Below are positions 1 through 43,454 of a stretch of 64,000 nucleotides of DNA, piece after piece. Both the position numbers and the translations under genes were made by a program. A model generated the notes under the pieces. The model had not been told where the DNA came from, did no database searches, and saw nothing but the letters and a program-made list of their open reading frames with translations. Each line of letters starts with the position of its first letter. Position 1 is the first letter of the stretch. The DNA is from Octopus bimaculoides (Eukaryota): contig NC_068998.1 in the NCBI RefSeq assembly GCF_001194135.2, positions 51,041,887-51,105,886 of the forward strand, read 5' to 3'.

Positions 1-84
1 CATACATACATACATACATACATGCACACATACATATATACATATATGTGTGTGTATATATATATTATATATATATATATATAT

Positions 85-217: not shown

Positions 218-218
<1 letters not shown>
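85..218. mobile_element. Penelope-like pseudo-LTR fragment
   Basis: TGAAGAG...CTCGAAACGT motif flanked by (TA)n; related sequence at about 8610-8840. Confidence 0.45.
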
Positions 219-265
<47 letters not shown>

Positions 266-456
266 CCAGTGTAAAAACCGTTTGGCTCTCTTAAAATGTT
301 CATGGACATTTCCCTTCATCATAGACAATTACATGTAATTTCCAATCGATAATGATAAAATGATTTCTAACTAAATGTACGTTTTATTTAATGATGCATT
401 TCATATCTTTGCAATGAGGCACAAATATTGATTAGTAGAAATTATCTGATTTGCAG

Positions 457-3179
457 ACATGGAACGTCAGGCTATCGCTGCTAAATGCTCACCCAAACAG
501 TTTTGTCCTGAAGTCATGAATTACATAAATAATAGTCTTGAAAAGGACTGTCAGTACGTAACAATTTATTACCTATATTACTATTCTTGTTACATCAAAT
601 AATTATGCTTTATTTTAATCTTCCTAAAAATTGTTACCACCAACAGTGTATTACAAATAGGTATTTTAACTCAGTTAAAAATTGGTGTTCTCAAATTAAA
701 TTCATTCGAATATTTCAGTGATACATAAGTAAAAGGGTAAAGACCCTCTTCAGGCATGAATGACCATAGGATTGCATCTAGAAAGTTACCCTCCGAGGCA
801 CAAGCCCGATCAAGGTTGTTTATGGAAGACTAGCCATCGTCCATGGATACCAGCCTCCCCTCTCCATGGCACCGATGTTGTCGAAGGGAAAGGCAAAGGG
901 GCTGATACAGCTTGGCACCAGTGATATCGCAACTCATTTCTATAGCTGAGTGAACTGGTGCAACGTGAAGTAAAGTGTATTACTCAAGTAGAAAAACGAA
1001 TAACAAAATCGCTCAAGATTTGATTGCAGGCAGAAAATATCGCTCAAATTAATATGGTCGACGCTCTACACACAATGTTGTCCAGTAATAATGGAAGATT
1101 ACTAAATACAAAGTTAATTTCCAACATAAACATAAATCATATCATTTAAAGAACATAAATAATGCAAACTATTGTCATATTTGAAGAATACTTGCTTCGG
1201 TACAGGGCTCTGATCTTAAAGTTACAGATATAAGCCCTAAATCAGGTAGAGTGTTGCAAATTTGAGAAAAGTAACTATTTTCCTCGTTGAAATGAGTTCA
1301 ACTCTGTCGTCCTGGTGTTATCTTCTTTTCTTTAAATTCTCTCATCCTTGATTTTCCGTTGGGGAATCTTTGGGAAGACAGTAGTTGTCTGCTTTGTTTA
1401 CATCCGATTGCTGTTATATAGGCCCCCAAAATAATTAATGAAACCTTGATGCATGCTTCCATGCCCTATAAACTAGCACGGGTGTATTGTACTTGTTACC
1501 AACTTTATTAAGCCTTCTTTTCTAAGAAATTGTCAACGGAATTGCATTTGCCTTTCAGATTCTATTACGAATATGTATTATGTGCTGCAACGAGACGCAG
1601 GTTGTGTGTTGATATGTACCTTCAAGAATATATAGATTACGACTGTGCTCGTAAGCTATTTTTAAAATAACCTTCCTATCAGAATCCTCGTGTCAACTAT
1701 ATGAACTAAATTTCAAACGATAATTACTTTTGTAAATTTATGTTGTGGGTTTATGTTGTAAATTTATGTTGTGTAAATTTATGTTGTGATATTTATTGAT
1801 ACTGGGAATGAAACGATTGAATGCCGCTGTTTGAATAATGTCGATTTGGCAAATATGATTAAAGATTTGGCCACTTTGGAGACAGTAAGTTTTGGCGAAA
1901 ACGCATGCACACACACAGCCACACACGTGCGCAAAAATGTACTCATACACATAAAATGTGAGAGAAGAGAACGTAGACAGCGACTGAGTTTATTAACTGA
2001 ACACGATTAACATAAACATTTTCCCATTCGACACATACCTAAAATAGAAATTTGTTTTACATATAAACAGAGAGAGCGAATGAAAGTGAGAGAGAAGCGG
2101 AGAGAGGTAGAAATATATTCACACATATATTTATGGTTGTGAACGTATTTCTCCAGAGGGAAAGAACGAAACATTAATACGTCGCTGTGAAATTAGTCAG
2201 CGTCGAATCACTGACACTAAGTGGGTCATGCCAAAAAGGCTATTCCAAAACGGCTCCAGACGTTTCATGCTTGTAAAATCTACAACTAGATATATAGCAA
2301 AATAAAGAAAAATATGTCAAGTGTTAATTTCTTATAGTTCTATTCGGACCCTGTTTGCAGAGACCAAAATTCACTTTATGGACGATTACATTTAAGTACC
2401 AATATAGTAATGGAATATTTTAATTCGGTTTAATTAACAGCGAAATTTAATAGGCGTTTAGTTTTATCACCGGTATCGATGAAGTTGGTGCAATGGAAGC
2501 TTATAAAATGACTCCGAAAATCTTCCAGAGTTAACTTCATCTATATCACGCAAGAATGTTAGATTGAAAAAATTTGCGAAGAATCATAAGTGAAGGCATA
2601 ACTTTGGTTCAGGAGTTTTACACACGCACGCACACAAATACGTATGTTATATACATAAATATATATGCATATATACATCCATATGCATATGTAGATCTAT
2701 ATGTATATACATACATATACAAATGCATGTATATATATATGTTGATGATTATATTTATATATGTCTATTTGTACGTATGTATGTATGTATGTATGTATGT
2801 ATGTATGTATGTATGTATGATTGACTTTGTGTTTGTCACAACACAGCTTGATAACCAGTGTTCGTATTTTACATCTTTGTAACTTGTAACCTCTACACAA
2901 AAGCACCATAAAAGATTTAACAGACTTTAAAAATGAATAAATACTGGGGCTGGTTTGTTCCACTAAAAACCCAAAACATTGCTCACGCATTATTGAAGTT
3001 CAATGAATGCCACAAAAAGACAAAAGGGCTAAAACTTAATTTAAATGTTTTAAACACCATGTCTTTTATTCATTGTAGCTAAAGCGACGCCACCGATTCC
3101 ACCTGAATGCTATGATTCGGCCTCTCTTTCGTCTCCAAAAATCATATTACCAATTCTTATTCTACCGATATTAGTGTGA
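457..3179 (+). CDS. G1 (5'-partial): six-Cys, predicted GPI-anchored small protein of an unnamed tandem family (subfamily A)
   Basis: Exons 457-553 (97 nt), 1559-1650 (92 nt) and 3079-3179, all AG/GT-bounded and splicing in frame: xMERQAIAAKCSPKQFCPEVMNYINNSLEKDCQFYYEYVLCAATRRRLCVDMYLQEYIDYDCAPKATPPIPPECYDSASLSSPKIILPILILPILV*. The 97 and 92 nt exon sizes and all intron phases match G2-G4. The upstream exons lie before the window. Confidence 0.88.
733..988 (-). mobile_element. SINE inserted in a G1 intron
   Basis: Common octopus-type SINE body. The G4 paralogous intron (about 37085-37110) shows the empty site. Confidence 0.75.
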
Positions 3180-8840: not shown

Positions 8841-9149
8841 TGAGTCATGTTAATTTCGATTTATGATCGCACTGGCGTGAAACTTGAAGTCCAAAAGCCT
8901 CTCACCTTCAGATTGAACATACACACACAAACACGCACATATATTTGTTGACATATGCACATGATTTTTCCGATGTGTGTGCGTTTATAAAGGGGGCTAA
9001 ATATGAATTATGATAATCACTAAATATGTCAGATAAAATGCCATACTCTATTCTATGCAGCGAATACATATATTCTTTCAGTGAGGACAAACAGCTTTCA
9101 CATCATTTCAAGTATATGAGATATATTCACTTCAATACGAATATTCAGA

Positions 9150-9419
9150 ATGGAATATTTCCAATGCTGGTATCTAGTCATTGTTCGTAAGTAGCTACAA
9201 AACATTTTTCTTTGTCTTAAGTATTTGTATCAAATCTGTTAATCTGTGTATAAAGTTCGATGTATCTATCTAAACTCTACTACTACCTTCCCTTTATTAA
9301 TTTAAATCATGTGTCTATGCCGTATCGAAACATATGTAGTACTTATTAAATAGCTGTCTAAACGTACTCCTTCCTGTTGACACTTTTTATTCAATTTATA
9401 TATATATATATATATATAG

Positions 9420-9451
<32 letters not shown>

Positions 9452-9573
9452 NNNNNNNNNNNNNNNNNNNNNNNNNNNNNNNNNNNNNNNNNNNNNNNNN
9501 NNNNNNNNNNNNNNNNNNNNNNNNNNNNNNNNNNNNNNNNNNNNNNNNNNNNNNNNNNNNNNNNNNNNNNNNN

Positions 9574-9613
<40 letters not shown>

Positions 9614-11718
9614 AGTGTGTGTGTGTATTTGTGTGTGCGTGCGTGCGTGTACATATACAGGGTACGTAAGGTATTTTGAGGGCATACATGATTTTCGTCA
9701 TTGCTGCAGTTTTTGTTAACTCTTTATAATCATTGTTTCAGAAAATAATAATGGTAGACCCTCAATTTACTCAAGAAATGGTGAGGCATGCTGTTGTTTT
9801 GGCTACAAAGGCTGAGCACAGCGATTTAACAATATCTCGATTTTTAAATAGTCGCCGGATATTTCTTCTACAAAGTTCGTAAGAAATTTGAGAGCAAAGG
9901 TTGAAACGTGTCACCACTATCAAAGCGAAGAAAACATTCTAATCGCTCTGAAGTCATCAGAGCACATGAATATATCCACCAGGTTAAACAGATCATTGAT
10001 TACAATCCCAGAAAATCCATGACGTCAATTGCAAAAGATTTCCATGTGTCACATGGAAGAATCAGAAATGTCCAAAAACATAGATGTAAGTCTTTATAAA
10101 GAGGAAAGGTCAACTTATGTTAGAAAAAGCAAAAAGAAATCACTACATCAGATCAAAAGGGCTCTTGAACAAATTGAAAAATCCAGCATCGAGAACTTGC
10201 TTGCCTTATGCCAAACTTTGAAGTTACCATTCTTTCTTACATTACACGATACCCATAATGAAGTCAACTGGATTTTTTATTTATTGACGACAAAATAAAG
10301 AAATTTTTTAACAAAAAAATTTATCAGAAATAATTCCACTCTGTCAAATTTCTATCAAATGTAAAGATACCATAAACAATGATAGTCATATTCGTCTTAA
10401 TCTAAATAATTTTGTTCAGTGTGTCTTTTATTATTTTTAACACTGACTCATCTTATTAAATATATTCACTATCTGTTTATTCTTCTCCGTATTTCAGATA
10501 TTAGTTTGTGGTCATGCTGGAATGCTCACTGGCCAAGTAAGTCTATCATAGTAAAAAAACAATTTTTGAATTCGAGTACTTGATTTAACGTTCTGTAACT
10601 TGTTGAACTGGAAGGGCGCGCGACAAGTACACATTGCAGAGACAATTACAAATAGCTCCCCCACTCCCCAAGGAAATGAGAAGGGGGAAGAGGAGATTAA
10701 GGGAGAGAGAAAGAGAGAGATGGAAAGAGAGGAGAAGGGTCCATTATTCTGCATTTGTGTGTTTAAATAGCAGTCACTGTTGAAATTCGTAATATAGTTG
10801 AAACAATGTCATGTAGATTTATAAAGGTATGGATTTAAAAATACATCGATAGGTAGTTAAATCAAAATGAAATGACCTTAACAAATAGCTTTGGATGTTA
10901 GAATTTCCATCTCTTACATGTCTTAGGCCAAAGACCGTAGCCAGACTGGAGCACCGCTGTTTTGTTATTACCGATATTATGAGAGTAGAGAGACAGCGAA
11001 GGGAATGCAGATATGATAACTAATTGGCTAAGTAGGTAGGTAGGTTAATTGGCTAGGTACGTAACTAGGTAGGTACGTACGTACGTAGGTGACTCTACAG
11101 ATATATCGACAGATATGCAAATAGAGAGATATGTTTCGGCTGATGTACTCTCCAGTCTTCATTAGGTGTTCTGATGGAATTTCGAACCCAACCCTTTATT
11201 TAACTAATGGGTTTCTCTGTTCTCATTCCTAAGGCACTCTTATTCTTATTTTTTTCTGCTGAAATTATGTCCTTGCCTGGGTTTGAACTCAGCCACGCTA
11301 TACGCCCGTAGAAAATTAAACAGTGAATTTTGGCGCTTATAAACCTAATGTTTTATTTTTTTCTTCATACCGATTCCCATATTACAATTATAACACTCGG
11401 ATTCTGAGTTCGATACCAGGCAGGGGATATATACACACATACATATATGTATATATATAAATATGTTTAATGTTTTGAATATATTTGTGCAATGCCTTTC
11501 ATTTCAATGTATTTTCTGCTTTTCACAGGGCTACAGGAGGAGACTGGTTAGTAAACTTTCCCTGAAATAAATAGGATATGGTTTGTTCTATATATTTTAC
11601 TGCAAACCTAATAATATGTCGTTTCGTATTATAATTTAACTTCCTAATTTGTTTTGCTAAATCTAATTTATAAATTGTAATTCATAAATTCATTAAATTT
11701 ATTTTTGCGAAGAATAAT

Positions 11719-11794
<76 letters not shown>

Positions 11795-12017
11795 NNNNNN
11801 NNNNNNNNNNNNNNNNNNNNNNNNNNNNNNNNNNNNNNNNNNNNNNNNNNNNNNNNNNNNNNNNNNNNNNNNNNNNNNNNNNNNNNNNNNNNNNNNNNNN
11901 NNNNNNNNNNNNNNNNNNNNNNNNNNNNNNNNNNNNNNNNNNNNNNNNNNNNNNNNNNNNNNNNNNNNNNNNNNNNNNNNNNNNNNNNNNNNNNNNNNNN
12001 NNNNNNNNNNNNNNNNN

Positions 12018-12049
<32 letters not shown>

Positions 12050-13075
12050 CATATAGGATATATATTTATTCCTTTCCTTTAAATTATAGCTAGAAAGATC
12101 GAGGAACAACGACAGTACTACAAAGGTATGTACCTTTCTCTGCATATCATAATTTGTATGTAGCTTATTTTACTTCTTGCGTTTTATCATATATATATAT
12201 CTATCTATATATGTATGTATATATAAGTGTGTGTGTGTGTTTGTGTGTGTGTCTGTATGTCTGTGTGTGTCTGTGTATACACGTGTGCAGTGTCGTATGG
12301 ATATTTATATTTATACATATGTATATATATATTTATATATATATATACATATATATGTGCATATATAAATACGTAGATATTTATACATATAACTTATGTG
12401 TTCTCACGTATGTATGTATGAATGTATGTATGTATATATGTATGTATGTATGTATGTATATGTATATATATATATNNNNNNNNNNNNNNNNNNNNNNNNN
12501 NNNNNNNNNNNNNNNNNNNNNNNNNNNNNNNNNNNNNNNNNNNNNNNNNNNNNNNNNNNNNNNNNNNNNNNNNNNNNNNNNNNNNNNNNNNNNNNNNNNN
12601 NNNNNNNNNNNNNNNNNNNNNNNNNNNNNNNNNNNNNNNNNNNNNNNNNNNNNNNNNNNNNNNNNNNNNNNNNNNNNNNNNNNNNNNNNNNNNNNNNNNN
12701 NNNNNNNNNNNNNNNNNNNNNNNNNNNNNNNNNNNNNNNNNNNNNNNNNNNNNNNNNNNNNNNNNNNNNNNNNNNNNNNNNNNNNNNNNNNNNNNNNNNN
12801 NNNNNNNNNNNNNNNNNNNNNNNNNNNNNNNNNNNNNNNNNNNNNNNNNNNNNNNNNNNNNNNNNNNNNNNNNNNNNNNNNNNNNNNNNNNNNNNNNNNN
12901 NNNNNNNNNNNNNNNNNNNNNNNNNNNNNNNNNNNNNNNNNNNNNNNNNNNNNNNNNNNNNNNNNNNNNNNNNNNNNNNNNNNNNNNNNNNNNNNNNNNN
13001 NNNNNNNNNNNNNNNNNNNNNNNNNNNNNNNNNNNNNNNNNNNNNNNNNNNNNNNNNNNNNNNNNNNNNNNNNNN

Positions 13076-13114
<39 letters not shown>

Positions 13115-16085
13115 CTATGCATGTATATGTATATGTCTGAATAACTAAACATCACGAACAATCTGAATATAATAGATTTTTTAGATGTTTTCTTCATCAT
13201 ATTCAATTAGACATTATAATTTCCAGTCGATAATGATAACCTCGTTTCTAACAAAATATACATTTTTTAAAACTTTACATCTATTTTATAATATTTTTTC
13301 AATGTGACATTAATATTGATACTAAAATTATTTAATTTTCAGCATTAAATGAAATATTTCAGGTTCACTCATGTGAGCCAAAATTACTTTGCCCTGAAAC
13401 CTTGCAATATTACACAGGTAGTCGTGCAGACAACTGTCGGTACATAATATTTTATTAACTTTTTTACTATTTATACCTCTTCTAATAATTATATTTGATT
13501 TTAATTTCCATAAACAATGATACCATCAAACGCTAATCATAAATATTTTTCTCTGACAGTGGAACTCGACTAAAAATTGTTTGGTAGTGTGTCTTCAAAA
13601 CTAAATCCACCAGATTAATTTCAGTGAGATATTAAAGGCGGAATCGATAAAAGACATACTAGTTAAGCAGAGTGATTGCTCTAATCGGTTCTATCCCGCC
13701 ACTTTAGCCAACATTTTTAATTAATATTTCGGTGACAAATGTCACAATAAGATTATATCGGAGAAAGTATTGTAATAAGGCTATCGCTGTACATATAATG
13801 TCCTCCACTGTCATGCTCCATAATTATTTAATACAACGTTAATTCCCAGCATAGGTATAAATCAAATAATTTAAAGCAGTAGTCCTTAAACTTTTCCCCT
13901 CAGGCCCACATTTGCTACGATCACACACTGAAATTGAAAATGTCGATGAGAAATAAAATATTTACAAAATCTGGCAGAAAATAGAAAATATGTTTAATGA
14001 TTACAATGCTATTGATGTCTTACTATCAGCTTGTCTAACTCAACTTTCAAATCTTGGTTCAATTTCAGGCGCAAATCTTCTCTTTTTCATTTTGTAAAAC
14101 ATTTCACTTATTTGTCAGCATATCATTTACAGCAGAAAGTCCTGCCTCAACCAGCCAGATGGTAGGAAACCATACTACGAATAGAACAGCTTTTCAAAGG
14201 GCAGGGATAGAATGATTTTACTTCCAGCCATTCCATCAATCCTTCCTTTTCAAGTCTCCCCATCAATGGATTGCTTTCTGACAGCTAAACACCCTCAAAC
14301 GGAGCCCATCTTCCTTGAGAAAAAGTACTTCATTTTCAGGCTGTAATGAGTACAACTCGATGCTGGTGCGACCTTCTATTGGTCCATCTGTCTCATCCTT
14401 TGTTTTCTGTTGAGGGATCTTTGGGAAGGCCATGATTATCTGCTTTGTTTACATCCGACTGTAATTATGTAGGCACCAAACGTAAATTAATGAAAGCATG
14501 ATACATATTTCTATGCCATATAAAGTAGCACGTGACAGCTGGATGCGTTATATTTATTACCAACTTTATTAAGTCTTCTTTTCTAAAATATTATTTACTG
14601 CTTTGCATTTACCTTTCAGATTCTATTACGAATATGAATTATGTGCTGTAAAAAAACGTTGGATTTGTGCTCAAAAGTATCTTGAAGAATATAAGACCTA
14701 TAACTGCGCTCGTAAGACATTTTGAGTATAACACTGTGGAAGGCGAATTTTGGCCTTGGGTGGCGACTGCTATTTCGTATTTGCTTACTCTTAGAATGTT
14801 TGAAAATGGGCTAATATTTCCTTCAAACTTTGCTTTTCTTAAGATATTTATTCAAACCCCAAAGAATCTGTCTCAAGACATGGCGATCTCCAACTACTCA
14901 TGTTCATGTAACAAGTTACCCTGCTCGAGTCGCGACGTCAAAAGCTCGGTTTTGGAATTTGGCAGACAATGACCTCTCAACAGGTCACTGAGGCCTTCTT
15001 GGTTGGGTGTAATATGGGTTTATCGCTTCAGCTGCAACTCTGTAATCTGGATTAAAGACTTCATCCTCTTTTATATGTGCTGCTCTCTTCTGAAGATTGC
15101 TGCTCTCTCTCTTTTTGCAGGAATGGGAACGAGGAGCTCAGGGAAGTGTGACACTGGAGTGATGGTTGAGAGAAGGTTTCGATATATGATAGCAATTGCA
15201 TTCTAGTTAGATCAATATTTGGAAGGGTCCGCCATGCAAATGATGCAATCGCTTAGGTGTTCAGTTAGTTCCCTCCAAATTCCTAGGATTGTTAGTTTCA
15301 TGACTATTTCACACTCTGCACCATCCTGCAACATAGCGAAAAAAACAAAAACCCAAGAAGAATGTGCATAAAAATACAAATACATTTCACCTAGTGTGGG
15401 TTTGGTCAGTAAGTGTTTCAATAACACTGGTTAAAAAATAATAAAACTAAAAATACATCAAAATTAGAAAAATTCCAAAACTTTTACACTTAAGAATTCC
15501 ACCATCAGAATATGTAGAATTTCCATCCGACCTTCTACAGTTCTTTTGCATAGTTCGCAGGTGAAATGAGGCGCCCAGGGTTTGCCTTGATCCTCAACAA
15601 GTATTCCGAAATATGCCTCACACATTTTAGCAGATGATGCCAGAGAGCAGATTATTGTTTTTGCATTGATAGATTCGCCACAGACAAAGCAAAATGCGTC
15701 TGTCGGATGTTTACAGCTACTTGATGCCATCTGTAACGAATGTATTTATCAATGACGATTTGTGTTCACGTGGACACGTTTTGTTTACGACTCCGCACCT
15801 TAGTAGAACGGCAAAAGAGGTTGAACGACTATCAGCCACTGAAAAATAATATGTACTGGAGTCGATTTCTCCTGCTAAATCCTAAAGGTAGTGCTGAAGC
15901 ATGACTGCAATTCAATGCCTGAAACAAAATAATTTTATTATTTTAAAATGAATCTAATTTTCTAAACACGCTCTTTTATATCTATTCTAGCTACAGCTTC
16001 GCCGCAACCCAAATATCATTCTTCAGCCTGTTTTACATCGCCTTACAGCATTTTACCAATTCTCATTCTACCAATATTGGTGTGA
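9150..16085 (+). CDS. G2: 137 aa secreted, predicted GPI-anchored six-Cys protein with 7 coding exons
   Basis: Exons 9150-9186, 10498-10536, 11529-11546, 12090-12125, 13343-13439, 14620-14711 and 15991-16085; canonical GT-AG, 414 nt, no internal stop: [137 protein letters not shown]. Each exon has a positional homologue in G3. Confidence 0.88.
9658..10200 (+). mobile_element. Decayed Tc1/mariner (maT/DD37D-like), 5' half, in G2 intron 1
   Basis: TA + CAGGGTACG terminus; a frameshifted HTH region ...SKRRKHSNRSEVIR...VKQIIDYNPRKSMTSIAKDFHVSHG. Confidence 0.65.
11128..11430. mobile_element. Penelope-pLTR/SINE composite repeat, same family as 43231-43623
   Basis: Shares ATGTTTCGGCTGAT...CCAG..TTCAT.AGGTGT...ATTTCGAAC...TTCTCATTCCTAAGG with the 43.2 kb copy and has an internal inverted repeat. 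Confidence 0.5.
13877..14140 (-). mobile_element. hAT (Charlie/Buster-like) transposon 3' fragment
   Basis: Terminus CAGTAGTCCTTAAACTTTT; the minus strand gives EAGLSAVNDMLTNK..., resembling the hAT dimerisation-domain end. Confidence 0.55.
15212..15770 (-). mobile_element. CMC/Chapaev3-like transposase N-terminal remnant in the last G2 intron
   Basis: MASSSCKHPTDAFCFVCGE...KMCEAYFGILVEDQGKPWAPHFTCELC...IWRELTEHLSDCIIC shows the Cys-rich Chapaev-type N-terminus; broken. Confidence 0.65.
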
Positions 16086-16218
16086 AGCAATTCGAAGTCA
16101 GCTGAAAAAAAATGTATCTATTGTGAGACTATTTATAAAAAAATAACCAATTAATGTTTTCTCTGACTAAATCATTTTCAGAATGAATATATGACGCAGA
16201 ATTTACATTTATATGGCA

Positions 16219-18149: not shown

Positions 18150-18452
<303 letters not shown>

Positions 18453-18598
18453 TACTGAGGTAAGAAATGTAAAATGAAAAGAGACAGATTAAATTATAAA
18501 CACATAAAATTGATATTGGGATATCTATCTACCAACAATAAAATATAACAGAAGCATAGAAAAAACATTTATATATATATATATATATNNNNNNNNNN

Positions 18599-19800: not shown

Positions 19801-21375
19801 ATGAAATGTTTTCTGTGCTGGTATCTTGTCATTGTTTGTAAGTAGCTACAATATGAAGCATTTTTCATCGTCATAAGTATTTCTATTAAATCTTTAATCT
19901 CTGTATAAGTTTCAATGTGTCTCTGTTACTTACCTCCCTTTATATATATGCTTTCCTATATTTTGGTTCGTCAGTAAAAAGCGATGCTAAACTCGACAAG
20001 GAAGTCCAAACTCGTATAAGAAAGGCCACTACAGTTTTTGGGAAGCCTTATGATCGATTTTCGAATGGCCACGATGTTTTAGTAAAGACAAAAATAGACG
20101 CGTATAAGTCAGTTGTCCTAAGAATTCATTTATATGAAGCAAAGTCTGAATAGCTTATCGTAAGAGCATCAGTCAGTTATCTTAGGCAATTATGCAAGGT
20201 TAAATAAAAGGATAGAGTAAAGAAGAGTACTATCCTGAAAATGTGCGGAATATCCGGGATATTAAATTCCATACTGAGATTATGTAAGTTAGACAGATTT
20301 GAAATCATTGCAAGCAGCACCTATGTAAACGTATCTACTCTTATTGGCAGTATCTACACTTTGACATACAATGTTGTTCCTAAAAAACTTGTAATCCAAT
20401 GGACGTGTGAAATGACATTTACAATTACACAATCTACTAGAAGTCCGCGAAGGGTGAAGCGGAGGTTACTGCGCCCGGGGTAGTTTTCCCCTTCAATATA
20501 TATATACCCCCAGTCTTATCAGCAACATGTTCGATAGGTTTACCGAAATTGTGGTTAGTTTCAATGATGTGGTTTCCTGGACACGCTAACATTATTCAAA
20601 AGTACGTGATGAGGTTGTCTCTACAGAGTTTCAGTAGAAATTGTTACCAGCACTGATTCTATTACGTCGTTTTATATCTGAGACGTCAAATGTAAACAAA
20701 CAATGTGATCGAAGATAAAAAGATGAGTAATGGGCGTATATGTCATATTTCGGGAGTTTTTTCTTCTTCATCAGCACCCATCTAACCCATTAATCATTCA
20801 CGAACTCATTGCTTAATTAGCTGCTACATATATCGGTGTATCGTTACTGGGTATACCAATTTACATATCAAACATATTCTTGGAACAACTTTCATAAAAT
20901 TTTTATACGAAATAATCTCACCCTGTTATATTTCTCATGTAAAGATACCATAAACAATAAAGTCGTATTCACATTAATCTAGATAATTGTGTTCGGTGTG
21001 TCATTTATAATTTTAAACTTTGACTCATCTTATTAAATATATTAATTATGCCTTTATTCTTTTTACACATTTCAGATATTAGTTTGTGGCCATGTTGGGA
21101 TGCACACTGGCTTAGTAAGTCTATCATAGTGAACACAGATATTGTCTAAAGCTGAGTATTTGTTTTAAAGTTCTGTAATTTGTGGAACCGGTTGAATGCG
21201 TGATAGATACACATTGCAGAGACAAACACCCACACTATAATATATATNNNNNNNNNNNNNNNNNNNNNNNNNNNNNNNNNNNNNNNNNNNNNNNNNNNNN
21301 NNNNNNNNNNNNNNNNNNNNNNNNNNNNNNNNNNNNNNNNNNNNNNNNNNNNNNNNNNNNNNNNNNNNNNNNNNN

Positions 21376-21416
<41 letters not shown>

Positions 21417-24170: not shown

Positions 24171-24674
24171 ATTTATTAATTTGTATATTATGCATTTTTC
24201 AAATTGTTGCACTTTCTTGTTTTCCACAGCGAAAAGCGAGTTACGTCGTGGTTAGTAAACTTTTCCTTACAATAAATAATGGGATACGGTATATACTCTT
24301 GTTATTAATAATATATAGTTTTGTATTATATTTTAACTTGTTAATTTGTGTTCAGTTACATTTATATATTATAATTCATAAATTCATTCCATCACTTATA
24401 AACATTCACACAACCCCTCCATACACACACATGCACGCACGCACACACACACACACACACACATACATATATATAACAACCTTCTCCAACTACAGTTCTC
24501 ATATTCGGTTAAAATGTCTTACGTTTAAGCTGGTTCCCATGCATTTCCCTGAAGAGAAGATTACATTCTTATCAACATCATCTATTCTTATGGAATGTAT
24601 AATTTGTAATCTTCGAAACATATGTTGGAAATAAAAGTATTCAGTTAACATATGCGTTTTACTCTGTTTACTAA

Positions 24675-24710
<36 letters not shown>

Positions 24711-25506
24711 TTACCGTATAGAAAATAGTCTAATATTGGAACACAGAAACATACGACGTAAAAAAATAGCCGCTAGTACATGTGGAATACTAACGCACAC
24801 CTGTTCATTTCGCGATAAGTATGCAGACATCCAGTCCTCCACAAAATGTAAAAGGAAGGATATTTAGTGAGCTTAAAATATATTTGTTCCATTCCATATT
24901 CATGCCGTATATTTGATTTCTGTTAAGCCACATCAAAATAAGCCATTAAGGTCAGTTTCTCCGAAAATATAGAAACGAACATTTTTCGAACAACGAAAAC
25001 AACAAACAGAGAAACGAGACATGCAGCATAAAGAGTATGCCCCTTCGTCAGTTGTCGCTGTTTCATTTACTCCTTGCCTTTGAAACGCGGAGTAAATGAA
25101 AAGGGGACAACTGACGAAGAGTATACTCTTTATGTTGCATGTCTCGTTTCTCTGTTTGTTTTCTTCGTTGTTCGAAAAAAGTTTGTTTTCTATGTTTTCG
25201 TTTCTCATTATGTTTAACGTTTTTTTTTACATCCTGTACCCATATATGCATGTATGTATACATATAAATGTAGGTATGTACATATATGTTTGGATATATA
25301 CATATATTTTTTCCTTTCTTTTAAATTGTAGCCAAAGCGATTAGAGACGAACGGCAGCGCTACGAAAGTATGTGGCCTTTTCTTCCTGTATATAACTTGT
25401 GCTGAATGATTTATTTATATATAAGTATATATATGTGTGTATATATACATGCGTACAAATTTATATATGTATATGTGTATGCACACACATACATATACAC
25501 GCACAC

Positions 25507-25583: not shown

Positions 25584-28500
25584 TAGGAGAGTATTGTTGT
25601 TCGCTTGCAGCATTGTGTATTGTTTGTAAAGAATAAAATGTTTTGAATGACACAGCAACGGACTATAATACAAACAATGGACTATAATATCTGTTGTAAT
25701 TTAATCATCCATAGTCTTTAACTTATGATTAAATTACAACAATTATAGTCCAGAATATATTTATTTATTTACCTCTTATTTACATTTTTAGCGCTTTCTT
25801 CCATTATCGTATTTATCGAACAATGGTTCAAATTTAGATTTCTTAGCACTTTTATAAAGAATTTTTTGGGGTTTGCCAAGCAAGGAAGAGGAAAGAAGAA
25901 AAAAAAAGGTATCATCACTCATATCGATACCCAGGTCCCTCACTGATTTAGGCTCTGGGATTGAAATTCCTTGTGGACCAGTGTACCCTGTAAGTTTCAT
26001 ATTCAGTTTTGGACGCTGGTAGCGCAGGGCTTGGATTTTTCAGCATTAAACTGCATATTATTATCCTCAGCCCATCTGTAAATTGAGTCCAACTCCTGCT
26101 GCAGAATCGCCGCCTTACTGCCTAAATATATTAGAAGATACGTAAATTTCTTTCTTCATCATATCCAATTCCACATTATAATTTCTAATCGACAATGATA
26201 AATAAAATATGCCTGCTTTCTTTTACATTCTCTTTCATATGTTTTCAATGTGGCAATAATATTGATACTAAATTATTTAATTCAGTGTTGTATCCAAATT
26301 TGAAGGTCAGAGATTGTTCGGCCAGAACAATTTGCCCTCACATCGTGAAATATAACAAAGGTACTGGTGCTGCAAACTGTCGGTACATAATATTTCATTT
26401 ATCTTATAGCTAATTTTATTAATGTAATGATTATGTTCTAATTTTAATTCTAATTTTATTAATCTAATAATTATGTTTAATTCTAATTTTTATAAAGATC
26501 CATAGAATTCAATGTTAATTACAAATATTTTTTCACATCGGTACTCAAAGAAAGATTGCTTGGTGGTGTGACTGAAACTAAATACTCTAGAATTTTTCAG
26601 TGATACATAAGTATAAAAATGAGTAACAATGTAAACCACAATAAGATTTGTTTGCAAACCGGACAAACAAGGTCGATGATCTGCGTGTAATGTCATCCTA
26701 TGTCATTCCCGAAGATTACCAAATACACAGATAACTTCCAGCATAAACATAAATCAATTTATTTAAAGTATATTTTGAACGCAAAATATTTCTAAAATTG
26801 AAGGATAGTAGTTTTAAGTGAAGTGTTTCGTCCTTGAGTAAAGTACTTCATTTGCAGGCTTCAATGAGTACAAATCGATACTGATGCAATCTACACTTCC
26901 TCCAGCTGTCTTGTCTTTGATTTTTACCTTGAGGGATCGTTGGGAAGGGAGTGATTGTCGGCCTTGTTTTTTTTTTTACATCCGATTGCAATTATGTAGG
27001 CACCAAAAATAATTCATGAAAACATGATACATATTTCCATGCCATATATGCTAGCAAGTGACAGCCGATGGATGTATTGTACTTATTACTAGCTATATTA
27101 AATCTTCTCTCCTAGAACATAATCCACTGATTTGTACTTGCATTTCAGATTTTATTACGAATATGAATTATGTGCTGCCAAAACAAACTGGTATTGTGTT
27201 GATGAGTACCTTTATGAATATGTGAACTATAACTGCGGTCGTAAGATATAAATATATAATCTTATTATCTGATTCCATGCATCGACTAAATCCTAAGCGA
27301 TAATTACTTCTGTCAATTTAAGATAAGAGTTTATACCCAACTGGCATTAACTTTATATTTAGATGACATTAAGTACCTACATAAAAATTTCTGAACGAAA
27401 CCGATAGACGCCGCTGTTTCGACGGTGTCGATTCATCACAGCTGGCTGGACATTTAACAAAGTTTGGCGACAATACATTTAGACATTGGAGACAAATATA
27501 ATATTCAGACACACATATGCACATGCAGATCTTAAATACGCATAATCAGAAATATATACTTACAGATAGGAAGCTCGAAAGAAGGGTTGGGATAGAGACG
27601 TTACAATTAACAATTGAACACGACTGATGTAAACACCTTCCCACACGCCATGAATAAAGAAAAATATTCTCACGCACCCACATGCACCCACATGCACTCA
27701 CACACACACACACACACATGTGAGCATATCTTTACAGATAGAGAGATAGAACGAAAGAAAGATTAAAACGTCGGTTGTCAAATTAGTTAGTGTCGAATTA
27801 ACGATGGCAAATGCGTCGCACCATAACGGCTGTTCCAAAATCTGTGATACTCATAAAGTCTACAACATAATATCCACAAAATACCCACAAAATAGATATT
27901 AAAATATCTGTCTAGTATTAACATCTTATCGTTCTATTCATTCTCATTATGTACAGACCTAAATTCATTATATGAATGGTTATATTTAAGTACCAATACA
28001 GTAATGGAATATTTTAATTCGGCTTAATCAACACCGGAATTGAATTGGTAATTAATTTCATCGCTGAACACGACAAAGGTGGTAGAATGGAAACTGGAAA
28101 AGTGACTCCGAAAAATTTTCAGAGTCAACTTCTTCATCTTTATCAAGCGAGAACATTAGATTGAAATACTTTGTGAAGACTCCTAGACGCTTGCATGACC
28201 CGTGTCAGTCTCACAACATGACACCTTGGATATGTACCCTTTACTGTAGCTCCGTATCAAATTATGTGTTGTGAATCAATTTGATGGACGGAAACTGTAT
28301 GTGTATGTGCGTGCGCGTGAATGCATGAGCGTATCTACATATGTATATGCGTATGAGCGTGCGTGTCTTGTGCATCTCCTTGAACGCCTTGAAAATCAGT
28401 CTCGTTTTGTTTATGTCTCTTTAAGGAAAGGAGACTGATGGAATATTTACCAGACTTTGAAAAATAATAAATAGTGGAGTCTATTTCTTGGACTAAAGTT

Positions 28501-28692
28501 TCAAGATAATGCTGAAGCACGACTCCGATCCAACACCAGAACCAAAATAACTTTGTTATTCCACAATAAACACCATATTTCATATTTATTCCAGCTACAG
28601 CCCCACCACCACTATCCATGAATGGTGCTTTGGCCTGTTTTACATCTCCACACAGTATATTACCAGTTCTTATTCTACTGATATTGGTGTGA
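19801..28692 (+). CDS. G3: 139 aa secreted, predicted GPI-anchored six-Cys protein with 7 coding exons
   Basis: Exons 19801-19837, 21076-21114, 24230-24250, 25332-25367, 26286-26382, 27149-27240 and 28595-28692; 420 nt in frame: [142 protein letters not shown]-track entry 26195..26413 contains the 97-nt exon. Confidence 0.88.
19960..20300 (+). mobile_element. RTE/BovB-like LINE post-RT fragment in G3 intron 1
   Basis: [28 protein letters not shown]...[12 protein letters not shown] resembles the YLGS...EIxxRIxKAxxAFG motif. Confidence 0.65.
22268..23200. mobile_element. Internally deleted Tc1/mariner remnant (minus strand, about 22600-23200) plus an inverted partial copy (+, 22268-22448)
   Basis: [19 protein letters not shown] (WPPRSPDL-type) segment is fused to [19 protein letters not shown]; present in both orientations. 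Confidence 0.7.
25850..26120 (-). mobile_element. CR1-like LINE RT fragment
   Basis: [21 protein letters not shown]...[15 protein letters not shown] (RT domains 6-7). Confidence 0.7.
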
Positions 28693-33559: not shown

Positions 33560-34039
33560 ATGAAATATTTTCTATGCTGGTTTCTTGTCATGGTTCGTAA
33601 GTATCTCAAATATAAGCAATTTTCGTCGTTGTAAACTTGCAATTTAATTTGTTAGTTTGTGTATATGATTCAATACTACAAATTCACTCTGTTCTTATAC
33701 ATGTGTATGTGTATGCATATAATCTCGTGTATATAATATAAAACATATGGATATGACAACTCGATAGAGATTGAATGTTTTCAAAAAATTTAGGCAAATC
33801 TTACAGCATTTTGATAAATCATTTATGAAGCTTTCGATATCATATTTGCTTTTTCTAAAATCATTTTTATGGTCTCTTTAGGTGTAGCGGTAGCTAATTC
33901 GTAAGTAGTTTTCTTCCCAACCACATGGTTCCTGCTTCAGTCCCACGTGGCAAATTGGGCGAGTGTCTTCTACTATAGTTTCAAGCCGGCCAAATACTTG
34001 TGAGTCGATTTGGTAGAGGGAAACTGAAAGAAGCCCTTC

Positions 34040-34070: not shown

Positions 34071-35478
34071 NNNNNNNNNNNNNNNNNNNNNNNNNNNNNN
34101 NNNNNNNNNNNNNNNNNNNNNNNNNNNNNNNNNNNNNNNNNNNNNNNNNNNNNNNNNNNNNNNNNNNNNNNNNNNNNNNNNNNNNNNNNNNNNNNNNNNN
34201 NNNNNNNNNNNNNNNNNNNNNNNNNNNNNNNNNNNNNNNNNNNNNNNNNNNNNNNNNNNNNNNNNNNNNNNNNNNNNNNNNNNNNNNNNNNNNNNNNNNN
34301 NNNNNNNNNNNNNNNNNNNNNNNNNNNNNNNNNNNNNNNNNNNNNNNNNNNNNNNNNNNNNNNNNNNNNNNNNNNNNNNNNNNNNNNNNNNNNNNNNNNN
34401 NNNNNNNNNNNNNNNNNNNNNNNNNNNNNNNNNNNNNNNNNNNNNNNNNNNNNNNNNNNNNNNNNNNNNNNNNNNNNNNNNNNNNNNNNNNNNNNNNNNN
34501 NNNNNNNNNNNNNNNNNNNNNNNNNNNNNNNNNNNNNNNNNNNNNNNNNNNNNNNNNNNNNNNNNNNNNNNNNNNNNNNNNNNNNNNNNNNTACATATAA
34601 TACTTATTTCATTTTACTCTCCCTTATGTTTTTTACAGAGGGAAATGTAGCTTTTGATGGTGAGTAAATTCTCTCTTACGATATAAATTGTTATGATTTG
34701 TGTCGTAAATTTTACTACATACATTATGTTATAGATTAAAAAAATTCGTGAACGGGAATTAATTCGTTTTTCTAACGATGATTCTCGGAGAAGTTAAATC
34801 TACAAATAATAGCATGTAAATTCGGGTTAAAAAACAACTAGAAGGCTGCTCGTCGGACTCAAACGTATATCTCCTGTAAGAATACACACACACACACCAT
34901 CTATATATCTTCACACGCACACATATCTTATCTGTTGTTGTGTAAAGTTCTGGAGAAGTCAGTATAAACGTATTGTGCAGTTATTAACCGCTGTACTATT
35001 CTGGATGGTATACCGATTTATTTAAATATCTATTCCAATTTCCCTTCAAATGATTACAAAAATAATTTCATATATTTAAATTTCAGTTACTATATTTACG
35101 TATGTTGGGTTCTACTTTTGTCGCCATCGCAGCTTCTAATTCTGCGTACATATTATTCAAAGGAAATTAAAATCCTTTAATTGGAATTTCGTTTTTTATA
35201 TTTTGTGGAAAGTTACGAGGGCGTTTGTGGAACAAAATATGAAGTATATTTGACCATTGTGTACCCACTTCAGAACTATTAAGGTTTCTCCATTCTTTCT
35301 TAAACGTTTACAAGTTGTATTATGTATGTCTGCATGTTTTAAATATGGTTTATGAATATATCTACGCAAATGCTCAATTTAAATCGTATGAGTAAAAAAA
35401 TTAAGGAAAATTTCCTTATCGCTTTGACTGGCTGTTCATTAAATGTGTCAGTTACATTTCATATATATACTTTGGTGA

Positions 35479-35567: not shown

Positions 35568-38205
35568 TGCGTGTGTGTGTAAGTTTGCCTGTGCAGATGG
35601 TGTGTGAGTGCTTGAATGTGTATGTGTGTGTATAAATGCATAGGTATGTAAGGTTATATATATGTATATACACATACGCATAACAATTTCTCTCTATATA
35701 TGTGTATATTATTTATGATATATTTTTAAAACTAATACCTTTTTATGTAAAAGATATCGTTTCCTTTAAATTATAGTCAAACGCATCAAGCAGAAAAAGG
35801 AGTTATTTGAACGTATGTAACATTTTATACTAAACTTAACTTGTAAATAGCTTATCTTAAATGTCTATTTTTCACCTTATATCTTATATATACACGTACA
35901 TACATTCATACATACACACACAATTTTACCATTACGCTTCATCTACAATTTTAATTATATTTAATTCCAAAATTACTGCAGAGCTTAATGACCACCACCA
36001 GGACCCGGTTTCCACAAAAACTAATCGACTGACCTCCTCCCCTAAAATTTCGGGCCTTATACCTAGAGTAAGAAAGAATATTTCTACTTTATCTGTGTCT
36101 AAGATAGAATTGGAATGTCTGTGTAAAAGAATGATGTATTTATGTAATAGAATGTAAAAGAATGATGTATTTACGTAACTTTCAATATTCTTCTTCATAT
36201 ATTATATTCAAAAATGAATTAAAGGATCGCCCAACAATTTCCATTTGTATTTTGCTTATAGAAGAGAAAGGCTGACAGCGTACCTAAAGCGATACTGACA
36301 ACTGTTTGCATGAAACACGTATATGTGTACATATATACGTACACTTGCGTCTGCACACACATCTGTATAGAGTGAGTCAGAGAGACAGATACAGAGGGAT
36401 GTGTGTGCGTGTGTGTGTGCGCGTGTGTGTGTGCGTGTGCGTGCGTGTGTTTGTATACGTCTGTAGATATATGTGCAATTTCACATCACTAACAACCACA
36501 TGATCTCGTAAAATACTTTTCGAAAGTAGAAGATTAAACTATCATGGCGTTGATTGTATAACCTGCACTCGATATAGCTGCACTCGATATAGCTAAACTC
36601 TGATCTCTTAAGATATATTTCCCTAAAGCACTGTAAACAATGAAAACTGCCTGAATATATAAAGAGATTCCTTTTATCATATTCTATAGCACATTATATT
36701 TTCCAATCGATATTAATGAAATGGTTTCTAACTAAACGTACAAGTATTACTTTACGATCTAATGCAAGATATGTTTTCAATGTTGCAATAATATTGAGTT
36801 AAACAATTATCTAATTTACAGAAATAGATAAAAAATTTAATGCTAATTCATGCTCGCCCGAAATCATTTGCCCTAATATCCTGGAGCATTTGAAAATGAA
36901 GCCTGAAGAGAACTGTCGGTATATATAATTTTATCAAACTTATTACTGTTTTTATCCCATCTAGTAAATACATTTTATTTTAATTTTCATAAATATTGAT
37001 TCCCTAAAATGTTAATTACAAATGTACTTGTTTCACGGTCAGAAACCTTTTGGTGTTGCCAAACTAAAGTCACTAGAATATTTCAATGATACATAAGCAA
37101 AGAAACGAATAACAAATACCAACTAAAATGAGATTTGATTGCAGACATTAAATATGGAAGAGAGCAATATGGCCGACGCTCTTCATATAATACTATCCAC
37201 TGTCATTATGGAGGATTACTAAACACAGAGTTAACGTGAAACATAGACATAAGTAATATAAGTTAAAGAACATAAAGCAAAATATTGTCAGATTTGAAGG
37301 ATAGTTGGTTCGGTATAGGACTCTGGTCATACAATCACATGTATAAATCCTAAACCTTGTAGAGCGTTGCTCGTTTGAGAAAATAACTAATTTCTCGTTG
37401 AAATGAGCGCAACCTGATGCTGATGTTAATTTTCTTCTTTCACCTGTGTCAGTACCTGAGGGATATTTGGCAAGGCAGTGATTGATTGCTTTGTTTACAT
37501 CCAATTGCAATTATGTAGGTGAAAAAAAAAAGAACATGAAAACATGATACATGTTTCCGTGCTATATAAAGTAGCACGTGACAGCTGGATGTGTTTATTT
37601 ATTATCAACTTTATCGAGTCTTCTCTTCTAAAATAATATCTAGTGATTTGTATTTGCCTTTCAGATACTATTACGAATATGAATTATGTGCTATAAAAAT
37701 CCGTCCGTCTTGTACTGGTGCGTACACTGAAGAATATGTGAAACATAAGTGTGCTGGTAAAAAAGTTTTAATGTAATCTTCAGATGAGAATCCATGTGCC
37801 CACTAAGTTCTAAACGATAATTACCGTTGTCGATTTACGATGCTAATTTATATATAACTAACATAGATTTCATATTTAGAGGACATCTAATATACGTAAA
37901 CATTATACAGAAATCTTGGAATGAGATGAATAGACGCCGCTGATGCGACGGTGTCAATTTATCCCCACTGATCGGACATTTTCTCAGTTTAGCAGCAATA
38001 AATTTTGGCACTGGTGTCAAATACGTACACATACGCATACATATACATAGTTATGTAAATACGCCAATGCAGAAATGTACACATTCACGAGAATATTAAT
38101 TTATCTATTGCAGAGAAATCAATACACAATAAATCCCATGCTTTGACGTATTGTATGTCTTCATATACCACACTACCACTTCTTATTCTCCCGTTATTGG
38201 TGTGA
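33560..38205 (+). CDS. G4: about 124 aa secreted, predicted GPI-anchored six-Cys protein; 39-nt exon 2 not seen (absent or in the N gap)
   Basis: Exons 33560-33596, 34639-34659, 35777-35812, 36822-36918, 37665-37756 and 38114-38205; in frame without exon 2: [124 protein letters not shown]. An N gap at 34071-34591 could hide exon 2. Confidence 0.85.
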
Positions 38206-41242: not shown

Positions 41243-42221
41243 ATGACACCTTTTCTATGTTTTTCTCTTTTCATTGTTGGTAAGTATCCTTGGAAATGTT
41301 CGTATTTAATCTGTGTATTTAATCTACAAATCGAAATGGATCCTGATTCTCTTTTTCTTGTCGGTGTTTCGGAACAAAGTGATTCTGATACAATTCTTCA
41401 GCAGAGGTTTGAAAGGGATACAAAGTTTTAAATATTAGATTCAGATTCTTTTATTTTTCACTCTTTTGAGTCATTGGTTTGTTACAATGCAGGTTCAGTT
41501 TCTTGAAGGATTTGGGGGGAAAATGGATCCCAATACTTCTTTTGTTTAATTTGGGCACTTATTGTATCGGTCCCGTTGTCGGACTGCTATGTTACCGAGC
41601 TATANNNNNNNNNNNNNNNNNNNNNNNNNNNNNNNNNNNNNNNNNNNNNNNNNNNNNNNNNNNNNNNNNNNNNNNNNNNNNNNNNNNNNNNNNNNNNNNN
41701 NNNNNNNNNNNNNNNNNNNNNNNNNNNNNNNNNNNNNNNNNNNNNNNNNNNNNNNNNNNNNNNNNNNNNNNNNNNNNNNNNNNNNNNNNNNNNNNNNNNN
41801 NNNNNNNNNNNNNNNNNNNNNNNNNNNNNNNNNNNNNNNNNNNNNNNNNNNNNNNNNNNNNNNNNNNNNNNNNNNNNNNNNNNNNNNNNNNNNNNNNNNN
41901 NNNNNNNNNNNNNNNNNNNNNNNNNNNNNNNNNNNNNNNNNNNNNNNNNNNNNNNNNNNNNNNNNNNNNNNNNNNNNNNNNNNNNNNNNNNNNNNNNNNN
42001 NNNNNGTGTTACATACTGATTGTCACACATTCTCTGATATTAAGGTGAAATTGTTAAAAACAGTGTTAAAAACAGTGTATGAAAATACACATATGGAAAA
42101 ATACATATACATATTCTTATACATATTCTTTGACAATCGAATAAAATTGAGAAGGAACTGACCTGGCCTTTTTCTCTTGTGTATATTGAAGGAATGTTTT
42201 ACTGTCTTAAGAGACAGTATG

Positions 42222-42309
<88 letters not shown>

Positions 42310-43382
42310 TGTGTATCTGTGTTTGTCACCCCAACATCGCTTGACAACCGATCGTGGTGTGTTTAGGTCCCCGTAAATTAGCGGTTCGGCAAAAGTAACC
42401 TATAGAATAAGTGCTAGGCTAACAAAGAATAAGTCCTGGGGTCGATTTGATTCGACTAAAGGCGGTGCTCCAGCATGGCCGTAGTCAAATGACTGAAACA
42501 AATAAAAGAAAGAAAGAAAGAAAGAAAGAAAAAAAGAAAGGAAGGAAGGAAGGAAGATCAATCTATTCGACTGTTAATGTAGTGCCTCAGCATGGTCGCA
42601 GTCCATTGGCTGAAACACGTTAAAGTTGAAAGATAAAAGATAACAGTTGCATTAAGAAGCAACATTATAATAATCATAATAAGGTGTATGGTTATCATAA
42701 TAATTATAATACGTCTATGATTATAATGATTATAATACAATCTATAATTATTATAATAATTATAATACGGTCTATAATTATTATAATGAATAATAGTCTT
42801 CAAAAAGTACGAAAAGAAGCTCTACAGAAAACTACTTCCTCTGCACACAAACTCACAAGATGTAAACAAAAGTCTTAGCTCCAACAATGCCCGATCACGA
42901 TAGTTTTCAGTTAATTTTAACATGGCTTCAGACTAGAGTAACATGTTTTACTTATATGGCAATTCGTAATATTTTTTCAATGTGATAAAAAACAGTGAAT
43001 AACTTCACGAAATATATTTTAAAGTTGCAGGCGCTGCTAAGAATATAACGTGCTTGTCTAAAGAATTATGTCCTGAATCTTGGATAAGGTTCCCGGAATC
43101 GAAAAATGACGAGCATCACTGCAAGTAAGTTTCTCTTACTTACGGCTATTACTATATTATCACAGCAGTCATTTACATATCAATTAATCTTTAAAAGCAA
43201 TCATATAAACTACATATTACCATTGTTTATATTATTTACATTTGACGGATATTTGTTCTCATCTTGTTTGTTGTTAGCACAATGTTTCGGCTGATATACC
43301 CTCCAGCCTTCATCAGGTGTCTTGGGGAAATTTCGAACTTGGGTTCTCATTCCTAAGGTAGTTTTCGATGTTGTTGTTGTTG

Positions 43383-43454
<72 letters not shown>

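Follow-up and report, generated by a model that had tools for sequence, protein, structure and literature searches.

Do very short exons, placed between the signal exon and the cysteine-bearing exons of a gene for a secreted protein, serve to vary that protein by splicing, or does the variation they encode come chiefly from divergence between gene copies? The question is raised by six tandem paralogs, here called G1 to G6, that all lie on the + strand of a 64,000-nucleotide (nt) stretch of the Octopus bimaculoides genome; this entire stretch is referred to below as the window. It matches chromosome record CM046618.1 of assembly GCA_001194135.2 at 100% identity, its runs of N among the matching parts, and its position 1 is position 51,041,887 of that record. 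A preliminary description of this DNA, made from the sequence letters, had noted runs of small symmetric exons in several of the genes and had likened them to the micro-exon genes (MEGs) of schistosomes, proposing a convergent combinatorial device. Here we report that the micro-exon cassette of G1 to G4 is real, modular and occasionally skipped. The explanation that we favor, with moderate confidence, is that these are orphan tandem paralogs in which the cassette is mostly included, and that variation of the predicted N-terminal helix arises chiefly through divergence of the paralogs, with splicing as a minor contributor.

Small symmetric exons in a phase-1 intron

The paralogs were delimited by a tblastn scan with the cysteine-containing (Cys) exons and the C-terminal tail as queries (G2, 9150-16085; G3, 19801-28692; G4, 33560-38205; G5 and G6 as in Table 1). 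Only the 3' part of G1 falls within the window, and its 5' part, with the first exon and the micro-exons of that gene, was taken from the locus upstream of the window (L002). The spliced models of all six genes have canonical AG/GT borders and open reading frames (ORFs), and they agree residue for residue with RefSeq proteins: G1 (XP_052830396), G2 (XP_014778060, a protein entered under three RefSeq accessions), G3 (XP_052830380, isoform X1, and XP_052830381), G4 (XP_052830378, isoform X1, and XP_052830379), G5 (XP_052830448 and XP_014778051) and G6 (XP_014778047).

The exon sizes first proposed, 39, 18 and 36 nt in G2, 39, 21 and 36 nt in G3, and 21 and 36 nt in G4, proved correct to the base when judged by splice borders, open frames and the RefSeq proteins, and the spliced open frames of these three genes reproduce the peptides that had been quoted for them. 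Equally sound was the statement that all lengths are multiples of three and all exons of class 1-1, each starting and ending in phase 1. Every micro-exon is bordered on one side by an AG acceptor with its pyrimidine tract and on the other by a GT donor. G1 likewise has exons of 21 and 36 nt in phase 1-1, and the 39-nt exon is seen in G2 and G3 only. The 36-nt length is constant in four paralogs though only 12-21 of the 36 bases are identical, and the sole length change among the 18- and 21-nt exons is one in-frame codon. The flanks of the 21-nt exons of G1 and G4 resemble those of the 18/21-nt exons of G2 and G3, which identifies them as the same exon.

At 33% G+C, the window is rich in TA, GT and CA microsatellites and contains 14 runs of N. 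The micro-exon calls might be chance matches to the splice consensus in AT-rich introns, short open stretches between an AG and a GT being frequent in AT-rich sequence. Against such an origin, the micro-exons are required to reproduce six independent RefSeq protein models exactly, four paralogs agree in where the exons lie, how long they are and in which phase, although their sequences have diverged heavily, and the flanking splice regions are conserved as well; we regard the chance reading as close to refuted. Whether the micro-exons arose as duplicates of other exons, or of one another, was also considered, and this origin was rejected, as no similarity beyond microsatellites was found.

The intron that contains the cassette has the same phase throughout the family. 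Counted from its ATG, exon 1 is 37 nt long in each of the six genes, and its end is in phase 1. In G5 the signal exon is spliced straight to the first Cys exon across a phase-1 intron, and G6 is, as the preliminary description had it, without a micro-exon: XP_014778047 joins the signal exon directly to the first Cys exon, and the intervening intron (53700-54567) is gap-free. Because intron 1 is in phase 1 family-wide, including the members that lack micro-exons, an exon lying inside it that was not 1-1 symmetric would break the gene. The symmetry is thus forced by the host intron, a condition of survival and not a sign of selection for skippability, and is weak evidence of design. Class 1-1 exons are a general rule for secreted metazoan proteins: under Patthy's exon-shuffling rule, they occupy phase-1 introns near the signal-peptide cleavage sites of extracellular metazoan proteins. 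The octopus genes resemble that pattern in having a phase-1 intron after the signal exon and 1-1 symmetric inserts, which explains the multiples of three without design, but the classical modules are whole folded domains of at least 100 nt, whereas the octopus units are 18-39 nt long and encode pieces of one helix.

Assembly gaps bear on this exon inventory in three of the genes. The gap in the G2 intron between the 18-nt and 36-nt exons has (CA)n to its left and (TA)n to its right, and the public assembly has the same N runs; since the gap is intronic, the splice sites determine the reading frame across it. To the left of the gap the alignment with G3 extends to ~24,467, and to the right it resumes at ~25,275; the matching G3 stretch of ~785 nt, which is fully sequenced, holds a CA/TA microsatellite and a palindromic element, with no exon there in either RefSeq G3 isoform. 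In the equivalent introns of G1 and G4, which are gap-free, the 21-nt exon joins the 36-nt exon directly. An additional exon specific to G2 inside the gap is possible, although nothing requires one. The palindromic element (window 24973-25188, in the G3 intron between the 21-nt and 36-nt exons) has 66-nt arms that are 92% complementary, with a second inverted pair of 31 nt inside. It resembles a miniature inverted-repeat element and is located where G3 corresponds to the G2 gap.

G1 and G4 each have a gap in intron 1 (L002 10440-11077 and, in the window, the G4 gap of Table 1), at the place where the 39-nt exon sits in G2 and G3, so that a G4 cassette of 21 and 36 nt only is indistinguishable from one with an unassembled 39-nt exon. 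A short interspersed repeat, containing gaaactgaaagaagcccgtcgt followed by a TA/TG microsatellite, was observed at window positions 33880-34070 and 45240-45420 and at L002 10380-10440. It directly precedes the intron 1 gaps of G1 and G4, with another copy in the last intron of G5, and its internal microsatellite probably caused the two gaps.

Predicted proteins and their divergence between paralogs

The G1 to G4 proteins have ~125-140 residues and consist of a hydrophobic N-terminus, a short predicted helix, a six-cysteine core predicted to be helical and a hydrophobic C-terminal tail. The six cysteines are invariant across the family; in the G1-G4 subfamily, which shares the motif FYYEYELCA, they are spaced C-x5-C-x14-C-x8-C-x7-C-x12-C. 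Exon 1 starts with M-(K/E/R) and has the typical hydrophobic core of a signal peptide, as judged by eye, and from this predicted signal peptide we infer that the products are secreted.

The micro-exons had been described as encoding charged helical stretches. That description fits the 18/21-nt and 36-nt exons, which encode ~19 charged residues, but not the 39-nt exon, whose product, (H/Y)ISLW(S/P)CW(N/D)AHW(P/L), is hydrophobic and Trp-rich and comes immediately after the 12-residue hydrophobic exon 1. The 39-nt exon is as conserved as exon 1 between G2 and G3 (~80-85%; ~80% identity with flanks included), and appears to belong to the signal region, which it would lengthen, and not to the charged helix. 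An AlphaFold2 model of mature G2, built on a 7-sequence alignment, is all helical with a mean predicted local distance difference test (pLDDT) score of 77.9; residues 2-24 (LQEETARKIEEQRQYYKALNEIF) form one helix at pLDDT 82-90, in agreement with a full-length model of lower confidence. The predicted N-terminal helix preceding the Cys core is accordingly made up of the residues of the 18/21-nt and 36-nt exons and the first ~10 residues of the next exon.

This helix segment is where the paralogs differ most. In the comparison of G2 with G3, 18% of 1,036 nt differ in alignable introns, and 13 of 75 nt in exon 1 and the 39-nt exon taken together. The share rises to 15 of 36 for the 36-nt exon (Fisher p = 0.0015) and to 43 of 84 nt (51%; Fisher p = 6e-11) for the helix segment as a whole. 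The nonsynonymous divergence (dN, Nei-Gojobori) of this pair is 0.12 in the signal, 0.83 in the helix segment and 0.31 in the Cys core (synonymous divergence, dS, 0.26). Over all paralogs, the 36-nt exon is identical at 12-21 of 36 positions (33-58%) versus 18-27 of 30 in the adjoining upstream intron; for pairs other than G2/G3 the corresponding figures are 12-17 of 36 and, in the upstream 30 nt, 18-22 of 30. BLAST alignments between paralogs end at the micro-exon borders, with the flanking splice regions conserved. Diversifying selection on the helix segment is likely on these comparisons, and a conserved signal followed by a hypervariable downstream region is the pattern of rapidly diversifying families of secreted or surface proteins. 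No part of the gene evolves faster than the helix segment, and the signal exons are conserved. The helix variation that these data demonstrate is sequence divergence between paralogs, from which most of the variation would thus stem, with splicing making a minor addition.

The precursors of conopeptides offer a parallel for this distribution of change: they share with the octopus genes a conserved signal (dN 0.12 here), a hypervariable next segment (dN 0.83), raised synonymous change and clustered small disulfide-rich products. There, however, the variable part is the Cys-rich mature toxin, whereas in the octopus it is a helix before the Cys core; the octopus proteins have an anchor-like C-terminal tail, and there is no homology between the two.

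Exon skipping, rival readings and known micro-exon systems

That any subset of the micro-exons could be skipped in frame was borne out: all 24 of the 24 inclusion and skipping combinations in G1 to G4 keep the frame and create no stop codon at a junction. The accompanying figure of up to 8 isoforms per gene stands as a theoretical count, but in the annotation G3 and G4 have a single skip each and G2 has none. In the X2 form of G3 the 39-nt exon is absent and exon 1 is joined to the 21-nt exon (...YLVIV-SKSELRR...), in the X2 form of G4 the 21-nt exon is absent and exon 1 is joined to the 36-nt exon (...FLVMV-LKRIKQ...), and G2 has one RefSeq protein form only. The 18-21-nt exons and the isoform pairs presumably entered the annotation through RNA alignments. 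An exact protein look-up of the skip isoforms returned no transcript-derived contigs, in an index that carries only the longest product of each gene.

If the architecture functioned as a combinatorial device, regulated skipping of any subset of micro-exons would give a repertoire of N-termini (up to 8 in G2 and G3, 4 in G1 and G4). In its favor, all subsets are in frame with no stop codon at a junction, the annotated isoforms of G3 and G4 each skip a different micro-exon, and the family is tandem, lineage-specific, fast-evolving and predicted to be secreted, with a conserved signal exon, as are micro-exon genes (PMC3961193; PMC4015677). Set against this, the annotated skips are all single and none is annotated for G2, the symmetry is forced by the phase-1 intron, the micro-exons number just two or three and make up 15-23% of the coding sequence, skipping of the 39-nt exon changes the signal region and not the helix, and loss of either helix exon would shorten the helix before the Cys core. 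Mix-and-match use of the micro-exons is thus weakly supported, and we consider such a device unlikely.

At the other extreme, the micro-exons might be constitutive and encode a spacer or propeptide, possibly cleaved at basic sites (RK, RR, KR, KK), with the skip isoforms as nonfunctional low-level splicing noise of tiny, weakly defined exons. Di-basic or basic-rich sites are present in every helix segment (ARKI in G2, LRRA in G3, VKRIKQKK in G4, MRHR in G1), very short exons are commonly skipped at low levels, and the form with every micro-exon included is X1 for G3 and G4 and the sole form for G2. Cleavage at the basic sites is putative, however; in place of a disordered pro-region, the structure model shows a confident helix that runs on into the beginning of the Cys exon. 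The segment also diverges more rapidly than the introns, and a simple spacer would not usually do so unless it were unconstrained. This reading we hold to be decidedly unlikely.

The preferred reading is of a cassette that is mostly included and varies chiefly between paralogs. The phase-1 intron that follows the signal exon houses two or three small cassette exons in G1 to G4, of which the 39-nt exon would extend the hydrophobic signal region while the 18/21-nt and 36-nt exons would build the helix ahead of the Cys core. Their forced 1-1 symmetry makes them evolutionary modules, present or absent between paralogs and, for one of them, 18 or 21 nt long, and at the same time makes them skippable in frame; most transcripts would include them, with single-exon skipping at least in G3 and G4.

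Several points weigh against this reading. Synonymous divergence is also high in the helix segment (proportion of synonymous differences, pS, 0.56), so the excess over the introns may partly reflect homogenization of the introns by gene conversion, or doubtful alignment, in place of selection on the protein. The intron standard is BLAST-alignable sequence, which is biased to conserved parts, and the counts are small. The RefSeq isoforms are computed models, the structure prediction rests on 7 sequences, and signal-peptide cleavage and glycosylphosphatidylinositol (GPI) anchoring were judged by eye only. Finally, gain of the cassette in G1 to G4 and its loss elsewhere require one event each and, with no outgroup, are equally parsimonious; the micro-exon subfamily G1-G4 and the other members may be sister groups.

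How close is the likeness to schistosome MEGs? Those genes have 10-20 very short exons (mostly 6-36 bp, multiples of three) that make up as much as ~75% of the coding sequence (bioRxiv 10.1101/2023.06.21.545858; PMC4015677), with many skip variants confirmed experimentally (bioRxiv 10.1101/2023.06.21.545858; PMC3961193; PMC4015677), and they encode small secreted proteins, a few of them membrane-anchored, in tandem, multi-copy and lineage-restricted sets (PMC3961193; PMC4015677; bioRxiv 10.1101/2023.06.21.545858). The octopus genes are alike in having a signal exon followed by symmetric micro-exons, tandem lineage-specific copies, fast evolution and some skipping. They are unlike in having only two or three micro-exons (18-39 nt) before a conventional disulfide-bonded domain, with two annotated single-skip isoforms, and the micro-exon share of the coding sequence is 93 of 414 nt in G2, 96 of 420 in G3, 57 of 375 in G4 and 57 of 384 in G1. 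The proposed MEG-like architecture therefore holds for the small symmetric exons after the signal exon, but their low number and share make the likeness shallow. Word-indexed and exhaustive profile searches found no sequence relation to a known MEG family, nor was there a Pfam match.

A nearer analogue than the MEGs is SmVAL6 of Schistosoma mansoni, an SCP/TAPS domain gene with seven small, alternatively used exons on the C-terminal side (PMC4015677). As in the octopus genes, exons of normal size for a domain are combined with a run of small exons that varies one end of a secreted protein; the octopus cassette differs in having two or three exons, on the N-terminal side, and an unrelated orphan domain. 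Neural microexons (3-27 nt, SRRM4/eMIC-dependent) are comparable as very short in-frame cassette exons that alter an element of the protein surface, but they are strongly conserved and found in conserved genes, whereas the octopus exons are among the fastest-evolving parts of an orphan gene. The octopus exons are not of this type: neural microexons are recognized by a length of at most 27 nt and strong conservation, limits that the 36- and 39-nt exons exceed in size. Paralogs share just 33-58% identity in the 36-nt exon, and the searches found no orthologs.

A bolder proposal is a small-scale convergence on the schistosome micro-exon strategy, in which the products would be GPI-anchored, disulfide-bonded helical surface proteins with a hypervariable recognition helix assembled from the symmetric micro-exons, and fast divergence of the paralogs together with regulated tissue- or cell-specific skipping would give a surface code for cell or chemical recognition. 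We regard it as decidedly unlikely; if true, it would be without precedent among molluscs and among free-living animals. Any biological role of the G1 to G4 products can at most be inferred.

The wider locus and its implications

The protein tails call for a correction to the earlier gene models, which halted at a read-through stop past the donor of the second Cys exon and so missed the last exon. This exon is separate in all members (Table 1) and encodes a hydrophobic C-terminus such as ...SSACFTSPYSILPILILPILV. The tail has the form ...S-S-A-C-F-T-S-P-x-S-ILPILILPILV or similar in all members, and is most simply read as a GPI-anchor signal, a likeness judged by eye. In GPI-anchored proteins, which also have an N-terminal signal peptide, such a signal comprises small residues where the anchor is attached, a short polar spacer and a hydrophobic stretch up to the C-terminus. 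In G1 to G4, read-through of the donor that precedes the tail exon leads to a stop within 3-8 codons (CARKTF, CGRKI, CAGKKVLM and CARKLFLK, each followed by the stop), so that the same gene could yield a secreted form when the last intron is retained and an anchored form when it is spliced. The two RefSeq proteins of G5 differ by two residues (…FIVVAGAAKN vs …FIVGAAKN) at the acceptor of the first Cys exon (window 43025-43031), which fits a pair of tandem acceptors 6 nt apart (aag/ttgcag/gcg, with slashes at the acceptors).

Table 1. Exons, micro-exons and assembly gaps of the six paralogs (window positions, except for the 5' part of G1, which is given in L002 coordinates)
Feature	Position	Strand	Details
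G1 5' part, upstream of window (L002)	exon 1 10049-10085; 21-nt 11206-11226; 36-nt 11721-11756
G1 3' part	457..3179	+	Cys exons 457-553, 1559-1650; tail exon 3079-3179
G2 exon 1	9150..9186	+	ATG and 12 signal-peptide codons (MEYFQCWYLVIV); ends in phase 1; matches start of XP_014778060
G2 39-nt micro-exon	10498..10536	+	phase 1-1; (H)ISLWSCWNAHWP; cag/gtaagt borders; in XP_014778060
G2 18-nt micro-exon	11529..11546	+	phase 1-1; (R)LQEET; cacag/gttagt borders; in XP_014778060
Assembly gap, G2 intron between 18-nt and 36-nt exons	11795..12017	.	compound (CA)n/(TA)n microsatellite
G2 36-nt micro-exon	12090..12125	+	phase 1-1; (A)RKIEEQRQYYK; tatag/gtatgt borders; in XP_014778060
G2 first Cys exon, 97 nt	13343..13439	+	phase 1 to 2; end of predicted N-terminal helix and Cys1-Cys3
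G2 second Cys exon, 92 nt	14620..14711	+	Cys4-Cys6; donor read-through gives ...ARKTF and stop at 14725
G2 last exon	15991..16085	+	PTASPQPKYHSSACFTSPYSILPILILPILV; hydrophobic C-terminal tail, GPI-anchor-signal-like
G3 exon 1	19801..19837	+	RefSeq start is an ATG 9 nt upstream
G3 39-nt micro-exon	21076..21114	+	phase 1-1; in RefSeq X1, skipped in X2
G3 21-nt micro-exon	24230..24250	+	phase 1-1; (T)KSELRR
G3 36-nt micro-exon	25332..25367	+	phase 1-1; first residue (A)
G3 first Cys exon, 97 nt	26286..26382	+
G3 second Cys exon, 92 nt	27149..27240	+
G3 tail exon	28595..28692	+
G4 exon 1 (MKYFLCWFLVMV)	33560..33596	+
Assembly gap, G4 intron 1	34071..34591	.	spot where a 39-nt exon would be expected
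G4 21-nt micro-exon	34639..34659	+	phase 1-1; (Q)GNVAFD; in RefSeq X1, skipped in X2
G4 36-nt micro-exon	35777..35812	+	phase 1-1; (V)KRIKQKKELFE
G4 first Cys exon, 97 nt	36822..36918	+
G4 second Cys exon, 92 nt	37665..37756	+
G4 tail exon	38114..38205	+
G5, without micro-exons	41243..45765	+	exon 1 41243-41279; Cys exons 43031-43124, 44515-44603; tail exon 45641-45765
G6, without micro-exons	53663..56412	+	exon 1 53663-53699; Cys exons 54568-54661, 55261-55349; tail exon 56315-56412

A second cluster of the family lies ~1.2 Mb upstream of the window (CM046618.1:49,845,975-49,869,760), on both strands. It comprises LOC128249852 and at least two or three further copies or fragments, all without micro-exons; its members (at least three or four copies) splice the signal exon straight to the Cys exon, as G5 and G6 do. 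Within the window, G1 (window 1-3179) and G2 are separate tandem genes, and each has a signal exon, but RefSeq lumps them under LOC106874739 as its isoforms X1 and X2, which looks like an annotation merge.

Beyond O. bimaculoides, word-indexed searches and an exhaustive profile search over 1.84 billion representatives found no homologs, so that in the searched databases the family is restricted to one species. A Pfam scan of the G2 to G4 proteins gave sub-threshold noise and no family, and Foldseek searches of the PDB with the full-length and mature G2 models gave best E-values of 2.2 and 5.5 and no fold assignment; a match to the N-terminal domain of RGM, a GPI-anchored protein, was weak (probability 0.18). 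Rfam had no match over window 9000-16200, a bacterial-style ORF listing of the region held repeat-derived and gap-spanning ORFs only, and a literature search with the five LOC identifiers found no paper.

Degenerate transposon remnants were observed at window 9740-10300 (G2 intron 1) and 22300-23240 (G3 intron 2), one ORF of which has a sub-threshold helix-turn-helix match (Pfam E = 0.005). They include an inverted pair of ORFs, ~70 residues each, with a common sequence starting WDDVNLLN(S/G). Between G2 and G3, at window 18340-18455, a long (TAG)n run passes directly into (TAA)n.

Because the exons and two isoforms are already in RefSeq, our findings mainly reinterpret existing annotation; what is new is the reading of the whole family as orphan, fast-evolving, probably surface-anchored proteins with an N-terminal helix built from modular micro-exons. 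Should regulated skipping prove true, the locus would represent a second, independent origin of micro-exon-based variation of secreted proteins, and as the octopus is a free-living cephalopod and not a parasite, escape from the immune defenses of a host could not account for such variation. In either case, the locus offers a clean example of small symmetric exons of a phase-1 intron acting as modules of gain and loss between young paralogs, and of an orphan, fast-evolving and probably surface-anchored Cys-rich family in a genome known for its lineage-specific gene expansions.

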